Shown here: piece after piece, positions 47,155-50,440 of the stretch
Layout: every line of letters starts with the position of its first letter
How positions within the stretch are numbered: position 1 is the first letter of the stretch
Assembly: GCA_020536535.1 (NCBI GenBank)
Contig: JAHLWZ010000809.1
Span: 65,068 to 129,067, forward strand
Direction of reading: 5' to 3'
Source of the DNA: Pelomyxa schiedti
Lineage: Eukaryota > Protista > Evosea
Length of the DNA stretch: 64,000 nt
Translations under genes and position numbers: made by a program
Notes under the pieces: generated by a model
Told to the model about the DNA's origin: nothing
The model's input: the letters and a program-made list of their open reading frames with translations, nothing else
The model's database searches: none

Positions 47155-47380
47155 TTTGTTCTGGTCAACAACCCCTTTGTGGGTTCTTTTGTTGTTTTTT
47201 TGTTTTTTTTCAAAAAAGACGAAAGTGCATGTTTTTTGTTTTTGCGTTTCCTAATCTTAAAGATGTACAACACAGTTCGTGCGTCGGGGAGTACTTGATC
47301 AGATCTCAATCAAGATCCCATCATCACAATGTGGTGTCCTTTCTTTCTTGTGCCGGGCGGCGTGCGTGCACCCCGGAATC

Positions 47381-47683
47381 TCACAGTGCGCCAGAGACCC
47401 ACAATGCAATCAGCACGACCATTACGACGATGAAGAAGAACACGCCGGTGAATATCCAGCAGAGGGGGCTGGCGCAGTTGGGATTGAGGCCCATGCCACT
47501 GTGCTTGGGGATGCAGGGCTCCTTGGTGTGCGAGTCCCAGCACGGGCAGCCCGAGCTCGTGCGGTAGCCCGAGAGCGTCTGCCACGACTCCTCGTTGTTC
47601 CGCTCGGCGTCGCGCTCGCTGCGCTGCTGGTGGTACGCAGCCGTGGTCTCGCTCTGCGGCACCTTGTCGAACTGCGAGCTCAT
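47381..47683 (-). CDS. Small hypothetical tail-anchored membrane protein (100 aa)
   Basis: ATG in aaaaaaaaATG context; Cys-containing segment followed by a C-terminal hydrophobic helix WIFTGVFFFIVVMVVLIALWV. Confidence 0.5.
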   Translation of the reverse strand: MSSQFDKVPQSETTAAYHQQRSERDAERNNEESWQTLSGYRTSSGCPCWDSHTKEPCIPKHSGMGLNPNCASPLCWIFTGVFFFIVVMVVLIALWVSGAL

Positions 47684-47882: not shown

Positions 47883-48502
47883 ATGATGGCGGGACAGAGG
47901 CCAAGGCGGATGGTTTGGATTGTGGGATTTGCATTGACATTGTTGTTGATATGTTGTGTGGTAGCGGAGAGGACCGACCCAAAATCGATCGAGGAATTCA
48001 GAGAGTATTTTCATTCGTTTGTTGTGGGTGCCAGTGGGAATTATTACTTTTTGGTTGAATTTCTTGTTGGTTTTCCTTTGCCTGTGTAACTGGTACTAAC
48101 TCGTTATTTATTCACTCTTCTAGGCAACTTGGAACAGGGCGTAACCTCAAAAACAGTGATGCTAGGTCGCTCTACAACTCACTGATAGCCAATTTGCCTT
48201 ATCTGATTGATTCTGGAGAATTGGTTGAGCAGTGCTTTGATTCCAAGGAGGACGAGGAATTCACCACAGCACAGGCTGCCCATGGATATAGACATCAGGT
48301 TAGAATGTATGTCCGCGAGAGGGGACCACTTTGGGCCGAGTGGATGCTCAAATTCCGGGACTGGTGGCTGTATGGACACTCCTCAGGCCCCACTTTTGAG
48401 GAGACTCTGGAGAAATATGGGAGCTGTGAAGCCATCATTGGTGCTGCTGAGAGGACCAATCCTTACTACAATAGCAAGGCCTCTGTTACTCATCCTATGT
48501 GA
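47883..48502 (+). CDS. Secreted ~190-aa protein with a bacterial polymorphic-toxin-like domain
   Basis: Signal peptide VWIVGFALTLLLICCVVA; 38-nt intron 48086-48123 (GTAAC...CTAAC...TAG) joins the exons in frame; LKNSDARSLYNSLIANLP...AQAAHGYRHQVRMYVR...LKFRDWWLYGHSSGPTFEETLEKYGSCEAIIGAAERTNPYYN. Confidence 0.7.
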
Positions 48503-48741: not shown

Positions 48742-50161
48742 ATGAAGGTGTATTTTTATTTATGTTGTCTTGTTGTTGGCCTCCATGCCTTACACTTCAG
48801 CAACTACACATTCAAAATTATGCAATTAACTGGTGCGTTTTTCCCGTATCTATCAACGATGGGATGAGAAACCTTAATCCGTGAAGACTTGCATTTCGCT
48901 CATGAAATTGATGACTTGTTGACTCTACCAATAATGGAGGCTGTGTTGGGTTTGTCCCTGCTCTTTCTTTTTCAATCCCTTTTTGTCCAAAATAAAATGA
49001 AGAATGCACTTTCAGTAAGCTAATGTAGTGTCAGATGCTGAAATGCAGGAATCCCCTGTTGGCGTTGTAATAATGACAGGAGATATAATTAGTGGAAGTG
49101 AAATGAACAACTCCACAGAGGGCAAAAGGCACGCCCAAGAAGAATGGGAAAAAATGGCACAGCCTCTCATAGACCGGGGACTTGTCTGGGCCATAACGTC
49201 GTTTAGAAGCTCAGCAAATAGGAGTCTAACCCCTCTTTGTTTTATCTCTTTTAGATTCGGAAATCATGACGATATGGGTCCCTGTACAAGAGAAGAACTT
49301 ATGACCATTGACCAATCACTTACTGGAAGTTTATCCCAGTTCGGTCCATCAGGTATTACCTTGATTGAGGTTAACCTTTCTGATAAAAGCAATGTAGACT
49401 TACCTGGAGTTAGCAATTACTGGCTCCCTATTTACTCTTCGGCGGAAGAGACAGAAATTGCAGCTATTCTTTATCTTATTGCTTCCTCTGATGGTGGCTG
49501 TGAAGATGTTCCCGATGGAGATGGCTGTGTTTCATACAATCAGGCAAGTCATATATAAGAGACAGACCAGAAGGAGTCCTTTTGTAACCGTTCTTGGCCA
49601 GGTTGATTGGTATAAATCTATCTCACGGGAACAAACCGGCGCCGGCAAACCCAAGTTCTCATTGATGTTCTCACACATCCCACTTCCAGAATATGTGGAT
49701 GTGTGGAACAACGAAACTTGCTATGGTACCAGATATGAGGATGCCTGTTGCCCACATGTAAGTAATTCCCTCCCTCATTTCCCATTACCCTAATATCACA
49801 ACTTACCTAATGTGAATACATTCCCCTCTTCCTTTTTCACACCACACAGCTCAACACTGGACTGTATGATGCAATGGTTGAAATGGGAGATGTCAGAGCC
49901 TTCTTGTGTGGTCATGATCACAGGAATGACTACTGTGGAGCCTTTGCAGCTCACCCAGAAGTATCCCTTTGTTATGGTAGGAAATCCGGCTGGGGCTACT
50001 ATGAGCCCTGGAGAATGTTGCATGGCTCCAGGGTGATTGAGCTCACCATGGACCCCCAGACACTGGATATCTCCTATTCTATGTGGATAAGAAACAAGGA
50101 CGGTGAGAAAGAGGTCCAGGAGCTGCACTTTCCAGAGGGCTCAGACCAGACAGAGTGTTAA
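48742..50161 (+). CDS. Secreted calcineurin-like metallophosphoesterase (Dcr2/PAP29-like)
   Basis: Signal peptide; FKIMQLTDLHF; IMTGDIISG; FGNHDD; FSHIPLPEY; FLCGHDHRNDYCG; LCYGRKSGWGYY; GSRVIEL. Confidence 0.9.
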
Positions 50162-50440
50162 AAAAATGAGATAGCATTTTAAAAATACAGACCCGAGGTG
50201 CCTCCAATCAGCTTCATTCAATCTATTCGAAACGGTGTTTATAAGATTCTTCAGGCGCGAACTGGGCTGCAACCATCGAAGCAAGGCACTTTTTTGCCAC
50301 AACACCGTGCCCTGCTTCTACCGAGGAGGGGGGCTATTTGTCAAATTTTGTGGAAATTGTGCATAATTATAAAAGGAAGATTTCCTCTTTGTGCTTACAA
50401 CATCCTTTTATTAGTTGAATAACTATTAAAACAAGTGGGG

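Follow-up and report, generated by a model that had tools for sequence, protein, structure and literature searches.

The gene Pelo_11136 of the amoeba Pelomyxa schiedti (Archamoebae) is situated at positions 47883 to 48502 of the 64,000-nt stretch analysed here (contig JAHLWZ010000809.1, positions 65,068 to 129,067; referred to below as the window), and its product of 166 aa (P0001) is annotated in NCBI as a hypothetical protein. As presented below, Pelo_11136 is a genuine single-copy nuclear gene of two exons (47883-48004 and 48124-48502), and the homology of its only domain to the tips of bacterial polymorphic toxins is secure on profile comparison. The explanation which we favor, with moderate confidence, is that the gene encodes a secreted member of this toxin-tip family, i.e., an old module of bacteria and eukaryotes that has been kept as a secreted or lumenal effector. 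The family itself is new; neither Pfam nor NCBIfam has a model for it, its fold has not been solved and no activity is assigned to it. Its members were met in bacteria in four delivery contexts, and among eukaryotes in several lineages of protists. The features of the gene are as follows:

47883..48004, + strand: exon 1 of Pelo_11136, 40 codons plus 2 nt, ending in phase 2; joined to exon 2 it matches P0001 exactly
47883..47966, + strand: predicted signal peptide or signal anchor, residues 1-28 (hydropathy)
48005..48123, + strand: intron of 119 nt in the annotated model, favored here (GTATTT donor, TACTAAC at 48094-48100, CTAG acceptor)
48086..48123, + strand: intron of 38 nt proposed in a preliminary description of the window, with an alternative GTAACT donor and the same acceptor (in frame, GT..AG); disfavored here
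48124..48502, + strand: exon 2 as read in the sequence, 125 codons, including the stop TGA at 48500-48502
48124..48481, + strand: core of the helical domain, about residues 41-160 of P0001 (phmmer, conservation table, AlphaFold2, hhalign)
48324..48474, + strand: RNA-library contig, the single one on the gene (run X3, record 11; length 151 nt at depth 2.3, identical to the window)

The domain sequence quoted in the preliminary description can be read in the window, as can the ATG at 47883 with the hydrophobic N-terminus that follows it, the AG of the acceptor (48122-48123) and exon 2 with its stop codon. The helical domain, which that description put at about 120 aa and which is about 125 aa by our estimate, is present in exon 2 and starts at the end of exon 1, where its first conserved residues (SIEEFRE) are encoded.

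Homology to bacterial toxin tips

When 1.84 billion representative proteins were searched exhaustively with phmmer, 37 proteins other than P0001 were returned, of which about 30 were true relatives, with E-values down to 2e-19; bacterial members of the family were matched at E-values from 2e-7 to 4e-4. Seven long matches composed of multiple stretches (P0002, P0009, P0013 and P0023-P0026) were rejected, being repeat proteins (FG-GAP, RTX, beta-helix) in which many weak matches to residues 84-124 had been summed. A profile search added about 80 further members. When a profile of the subclade containing the Pelomyxa protein was compared by hhalign with a profile of the tips of Rhs and extracellular contractile injection system (eCIS) proteins alone, the two were aligned over 103 columns with a probability of 98.75% and an E-value of 1.4e-16. 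The homology is regarded as secure because this comparison, made between the subclade alone and the bacterial tips alone, was significant. The resemblance to polymorphic-toxin tips, which the preliminary description had pointed out, is thus borne out by both the profile comparison and the bacterial phmmer matches.

No match above threshold was obtained for the domain in Pfam, NCBIfam or the sequences of the Protein Data Bank (PDB). Profile matches to designed helical bundles in the PDB (E 3e-4) reflected helical composition only, and three Pfam candidates fell below their gathering thresholds: LPD3 (PF18798; 13 bits against a cut-off of 27), Pre-PUA (PF17832; 19.7 bits against 23.5) and HNH_repeat (PF18780; best E 0.019, in 5 of 55 members). 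A word-index protein search returned only the Pelo_11136 protein itself, and a search for related loci with P0016 alone found nothing.

Protein features and predicted fold

Apart from the signal peptide or anchor at its N-terminus, P0001 is made up of a single all-helical domain. The N-terminus has a basic n-region, 18-19 hydrophobic residues and V-V-A before E29, and its Kyte-Doolittle hydropathy in a 15-aa window reaches a maximum of 3.02 at residues 13-27. These features, together with the same layout across the subclade, fit either a signal anchor or a signal peptide that is cleaved off, in agreement with the preliminary description.

Conservation was calculated over the columns of 55 aligned sequences. 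The motifs of the family are R..Y, a helix with R-x3-R-x3-R, R-D/N...Y-G...G-P and R-T-N, and the conserved set comprises five arginines (three of them at positions i, i+4 and i+8 of one helix), two tyrosines and one asparagine. In the Pelomyxa domain the corresponding residues are R55, Y58, R97, R101, R105, R119, D120, Y124-G125, G129-P130 and R151-T152-N153; every residue conserved across the family, including position 120, which may be D or N, is therefore kept.

AlphaFold2 supplied with the 55-sequence alignment gave an all-helical model with a mean predicted local distance difference test score (pLDDT) of 92.9 and a predicted template modeling score of 0.86; a model from the single sequence (pLDDT 46) was discarded. 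The fold has no solved relative among the structures searched: the best Foldseek match in the PDB had an E-value of 1.8, as had the best match in BFVD, and the best Z-score of VIA-align over 48,161 PDB representatives was 5.7, which is within helical noise. No match clearly above background was obtained to known toxin folds of solved structure, among them HEPN, colicin-type and BECR. Structure matches in the ESM Atlas were bacterial clusters, one of them with a PT-TG pre-toxin domain (TM-score 0.64), and a search of the same atlas by sequence features gave no usable match. The C-terminal third of the domain showed weak matches, below threshold, to helix-turn-helix, helix-hairpin-helix and homing-endonuclease-repeat models.

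Delivery contexts and partner genes in bacteria

The bacterial relatives were examined for the position of the domain and for adjacent genes, as the preliminary description had proposed. The tips lie at or near the C-termini of toxin proteins, next to conserved small partner genes. The metagenomic Rhs proteins P0041-P0046 consist of the end of an Rhs core (DPxGL-type), a low-complexity linker and the domain as the last ~110 residues; in P0043 and P0046 the Rhs-associated core model TIGR03696 is passed directly upstream of the tip, and one Rhs-tip locus sits amid YD-shell fragments. In locus L007 (1928-3716), an orphan Rhs C-terminal cassette, a frameshift parts the tip domain from the YD-shell/core; a 149-aa partner follows, and in the vicinity are a weak WapI-like gene and an AbiEi/AbiEii pair. 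The Rhs tips, which are followed by a conserved gene of 149-157 aa, belong to the same domain family as the Pelomyxa protein, but they represent another subclade (R-N rather than R-D, and Trp/Glu in place of a Cys pair), and neither the contact-dependent delivery nor the cytoplasmic immunity partner of Rhs toxins is present in Pelomyxa.

In the contact-dependent inhibition (CDI) system of Ralstonia solanacearum MAFF 301560, a megaplasmid-encoded protein of 3,374 aa with hemagglutinin repeats carries the domain as its last ~100 residues. It is followed by an 81-aa open reading frame (ORF) with a 4-nt overlap and then by a ShlB/POTRA transporter, i.e., in the Burkholderia-type order cdiA-I-B. 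The tip matches the Pelomyxa protein by BLASTP (E 1e-5) and the subclade by hhalign (85%, E 6e-6), and it lacks the RD..YG..GP motif. The large protein is annotated merely as hypothetical. Compared with this CdiA/CdiI system, in which the same domain family stands at the end of the exoprotein, the Pelomyxa protein has neither the carrier, the two-partner secretion nor the 81-aa partner, and has instead a eukaryotic signal peptide and an intron. The C-terminal position on a large secreted carrier is not found in Pelomyxa, where the 166 aa hold the signal peptide and the domain only.

A prophage of Mycobacterium abscessus, prophiGD43A-1, encodes gp117, which is annotated as 'polymorphic toxin protein' and contains the domain followed by ~75 further residues; it shares 27% identity with the P0033 domain over 96% (E 2e-8). 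Thus gp117 has the same domain as P0001, but it differs in its ESX/WXG100 export, in the residues after the domain and in its partner family (DUF7161), a candidate immunity family of this branch of the toxin domain. An eCIS context is represented by P0031, in which an N-terminal eCIS_core (DUF4157) is joined to the domain. The two loci with accession coordinates are:

AP024104.1 1578939-1591864 (L022): complete cdiA-I-B-type locus of Ralstonia, BCM05349.1 / BCM05350.1 / BCM05352.1
MW584179.1 60206-62193 (L021): prophiGD43A-1 cassette, with gp118 (ESX protein), gp117 (toxin) and gp116/gp115 (tandem DUF7161)

At least two families of conserved small partners were distinguished. The first comprises genes of 149 and 157 aa after two Rhs tips (39% identical, E 2e-30), and the second comprises genes of 83, 74 and 81 aa after P0033, P0035 and the Ralstonia CdiA, respectively (E 1e-16 and 5e-15). 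Neither a signal peptide nor a Pfam family was found in the partners of either family. By gene order and conservation, both families look like immunity proteins, and the arrangement is what would be expected if the tips and partners were toxin-immunity pairs whose target is in the bacterial cytoplasm. Complex prediction for an Rhs tip and its downstream partner gave a score of 0.00, which counts neither for nor against pairing.

Other bacterial members are secreted through a signal peptide. Streptomyces microflavus has a stand-alone Sec-secreted member of 186 aa (WP_176145625.1), and a large clade, found on contigs from metagenomes and NCBI and called Firmicutes-like solely from matches to phage LysM, consists of ~261-aa proteins with a signal peptide, the domain and LysM. 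Like the Pelomyxa protein, these have a signal peptide and the domain without a carrier, but they fall in a separate clade.

Eukaryotic members and phylogenetic position

In the maximum-likelihood tree, from which the Ralstonia CdiA tip was left out, the Rhs/eCIS tips together with the Streptomyces/LysM clade were separated from a second group (98/98). The Streptomyces/LysM clade was itself well supported (99/98) and far from the Pelomyxa subclade. The second group contained the bacterial proteins P0033-P0035, with their immunity-like partners, and as their sister the subclade with Pelomyxa (95/95). The subclade is marked by an R-D motif that does not vary, in contrast to the R-N of most Rhs-type tips, by a Cys pair in 82-91% of its members and by longer loops.

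Its eukaryotic members are the Pelomyxa protein, an intron-bearing gene on a 627-kb eukaryotic metagenome contig (L002), P0008, whose gene adjoins a Hyccin-domain gene, and RFI_08587 of Reticulomyxa filosa. The L002 gene, which has an F-box neighbor, encodes P0003, the closest relative of P0001 (46% identical in phmmer). Three members are bacterial by context: P0016 (exosortase operon), P0019 (BrnQ, GT4, CorA) and P0037 (metagenome-assembled genome of Pseudanabaena). On two contigs with P0004 (L004 and L005; 57-59% GC), dense long ORFs, one of 1,460 aa, have hardly any Pfam matches, and one neighbor resembles AAT/ceramidase-type Ntn hydrolases.

An N-terminal hydrophobic segment was present in 11 proteins of the subclade, that of Pelomyxa included, and in the spliced L002 homolog; four have an internal membrane segment ahead of the domain, and two add a C-terminal anchor. 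The domain is thus consistently predicted to be extracytoplasmic in nearly all members. In P0133 it is fused to a C-terminal carbohydrate-binding module of family 56 (CBM56; beta-1,3-glucan; Pfam match), and P0030 has a C-terminal tail similar to that of P0133; both proteins are probably eukaryotic in origin.

The best tree placed Pelomyxa beside bacterial members with weak support. In approximately unbiased (AU) tests, neither a single clade of all signal-peptide-type (eukaryotic) sequences (p 0.33) nor a sister relationship of Pelomyxa and L002 (p 0.45) was rejected. A lateral origin, old and in either direction, is likely on these data. That the gene is old in this lineage is shown by its intron, which is common to two copies that are only 46% identical; no synteny beyond the gene itself was found between the Pelomyxa and L002 loci. 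The preliminary description had proposed a laterally acquired toxin module that was given a eukaryotic signal peptide. The homology and the signal peptide hold, whereas a domestication specific to Pelomyxa does not, the subclade being older and including both protists and bacteria. In the phylogeny, suggested there as a check, the sister of the subclade is a set of bacterial proteins that have immunity-like partners (98/98), yet bacteria also occur inside the subclade, and the AU tests rejected neither one eukaryotic clade nor other placements.

Possible function

Under the explanation favored here, a toxin module would have passed between bacteria and eukaryotes long ago, before the gain of the intron shared with the 46%-identical relative, and would have been kept as a secreted or lumenal effector. 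As the protein would be exported during its synthesis, the producing cell could do without an immunity protein. The effector would most likely act in the phagosome, lysosome or symbiosome or outside the cell, and its likely target would be a phosphate-rich microbial polymer (nucleic acid, envelope precursor or glycan), which the ladder of conserved arginines with the Tyr and Asn residues could engage. That the domain recognizes or cleaves a phosphate-rich polymer such as nucleic acid is a tentative proposal. A target of the nucleic-acid type would fit the cytoplasmic immunity-like partners in bacteria, and by analogy it would suit a logic like that of barnase and barstar for the secreted forms. 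The LysM and CBM56 fusions could instead reflect a role directed at cell wall or glycan. The use against prey or endosymbionts, and indeed any antibacterial role, is pure inference. A still more ambitious combination is rather improbable in our judgment, namely a new toxin fold with an unconventional Arg/Tyr/Asn mechanism (e.g., a metal-independent nuclease, or an enzyme on phosphate-linked envelope precursors), moved repeatedly between bacteria and protists and employed in Pelomyxa as a phagosome weapon or in policing its cytoplasmic prokaryotic symbionts.

Several observations weigh against the explanation as a whole. In the 55 aligned sequences no acidic residue and no His, Ser or Cys is invariant, so there is no hint of a standard hydrolase. 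Some bacterial members are merely secreted and have no obvious immunity gene, and the domain may for this reason not be intrinsically toxic. The lack of a signal peptide in the partners points to a cytoplasmic target in bacteria, and a protein secreted by the amoeba would need a route of entry to reach it; the missing route is a real difficulty for an antibacterial weapon acting in the cytoplasm. The subclade mixes eukaryotic and bacterial members, most others come from short metagenome contigs, and the tree fixes neither the number nor the direction of transfers. Expression is evidenced by one low-depth contig, and none of the RNA contigs from three single-cell libraries crosses a splice junction of Pelo_11136, so the donor of the 119-nt intron is inferred.

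The concept of a borrowed interbacterial toxin is already known. Domesticated amidase effectors (Dae) of ticks and other eukaryotes were reportedly derived, in their original description, from type VI Tae toxins. Pelo_11136 is comparable in having a eukaryotic gene structure in a nuclear context and a secretion signal in place of the bacterial delivery domain. As in the Dae proteins of ticks and other eukaryotes (bioRxiv 10.1101/2020.04.10.036376), an interbacterial toxin domain is found in a eukaryotic genome, where it has introns and a secretion signal of eukaryotic type but lacks its immunity gene. The Dae proteins differ in that their peptidoglycan amidase activity acts on an externally accessible target and their antibacterial function has been shown, whereas P0001 has no assigned activity and the bacterial partners of its family suggest a cytoplasmic target.

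The foremost alternative is that the Pelomyxa subclade has left toxin duty and shares only ancestry with the toxin tips, its members being non-toxic extracytoplasmic proteins that, for example, bind or remodel glycans or other polymers at the surface of prey, of the cyst wall or of the cell coat. We consider this possible, if less likely. It would account for the features peculiar to the subclade (the invariant R-D, the Cys pair, the longer loops), and the CBM56 fusion of P0133, the similar tail of P0030 and the LysM fusions of the Firmicutes branch would suit a glycan-associated role. The membrane-anchored bacterial members without an adjacent small partner, the stand-alone Streptomyces member with a signal peptide and the absence of a conserved catalytic acid or His also agree with it. 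However, all residues conserved in the toxin tips are present in Pelomyxa, the sister group of the subclade consists of bacterial proteins with conserved immunity-like partners, and a member of that partner family is also encoded after the CdiA tip of Ralstonia. Carbohydrate-binding modules, moreover, are also common on secreted antimicrobial enzymes.

Based on the results of this study, a family not named in current databases is now defined, with a confidently predicted fold that has no solved relative, and secreted versions exist in several distant protists, one of which is an amoeba that harbors many prokaryotic symbionts. Should the eukaryotic proteins prove to act on microbes, as the favored explanation supposes, they would represent a second and mechanistically different case of interbacterial weapons borrowed in the manner of Dae and would give a handle on how anaerobic amoebae treat symbionts and prey. 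Otherwise, a toxin scaffold would have been re-used in an extracellular, perhaps glycan-associated, role.

Gene structure and the length of the intron

The 38-nt intron of the preliminary description (48086-48123) restores the frame and has GT..AG ends, as stated there, but the fit to homologs, the intron of the relative and the base composition favor 119 nt, and the intron probably has its donor at 48004|48005. Against a hidden Markov model built from 19 relatives, with Pelomyxa left out, the protein of the 119-nt model scored 138.5 bits and that of the 38-nt model 128.5 bits. The alignment crosses the junction only with the 119-nt model, in which SIEEFRE|QLGTGRNL fits the family motif s.eeLR..LG.GR.L. 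In the L002 gene, a signal-peptide exon and an intron were found upstream of the called ORF; this intron (43 nt, GT..AG, phase 2) has the identical alignment position and phase as that of Pelomyxa. The 81 nt in dispute (48005-48085) have 52% T and 37% GC, like local introns, and both exons have ~49% GC and ~25% T. If translated, they would add 27 hydrophobic residues without counterpart in any homolog. The NCBI gene model was built with transcript-aware tools (PMC8887013). The supplementary files of that paper contained nothing on intron lengths or Pelo_11136.

That the 38-nt intron is correct, giving a protein of 193 aa with the extra segment between signal peptide and domain, or that both donors are used, is accordingly considered improbable. 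Its GT..AG ends, the kept frame and the TACTAAC inside it are in order, and very short introns are known both here (45 nt in a neighboring gene) and in L002. Yet the alternative scores 10 bits lower against the relatives, its extra segment is T-rich, unmatched in homologs and interrupts a conserved motif, its donor would lie just 13 nt from the branch A, and the transcript-aware NCBI model has the longer intron.

Finally, it is hardly credible that Pelo_11136 is not a functional Pelomyxa gene but the product of bacterial contamination or mis-assembly, or else a laterally transferred fragment in decay. Although its RNA support is very weak, paralogs are lacking and no named homolog was found in other Archamoebae with the queries used, it lies in the middle of an intron-rich nuclear contig of 129 kb between genes with RNA-verified spliceosomal introns, its base composition agrees with the host (coding sequence 49% GC; window 45%), its frame is intact with every conserved residue present, and its intron position is common to the copy of another eukaryote (L002). 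A second copy was sought in the 52-Mb assembly of the amoeba and none was found.

Neighboring genes

RNA contigs cover both neighbors of Pelo_11136:

47381-47683, - strand: divergent ORF of 100 aa, with RNA contigs at 47297-47642 in two runs
49034-50205, + strand: downstream gene with RNA-verified introns at 49353-49397 (45 nt, GT-AG), 49544-49601 (58 nt, GC-AG) and 49758-49849 (92 nt, GT-AG)

The locus is taken as a normal nuclear region since the downstream neighbor has spliced RNA junctions. Homologs of both bacterial partner families were sought in the Pelomyxa genome and none was found with the queries used; the neighbors are the unrelated 100-aa ORF and the spliced downstream gene, in keeping with the earlier statement that no immunity gene is apparent nearby. 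The divergent 100-aa ORF is unlikely to be an immunity gene, because nothing similar lies beside the L002 homolog and it has no Pfam family; by appearance it encodes a Cys-rich, tail-anchored membrane protein. In the downstream gene, which has a poly(A) end near 50205, the metallophosphoesterase motifs GNHD and GHDH were seen by eye, and Pfam searches with its single exons were uninformative. For a stretch of 41 nt in its last exon (49853-49893), each of the four runs also had matches, with 4 differences, on other contigs; this probably reflects a conserved motif of a paralog.

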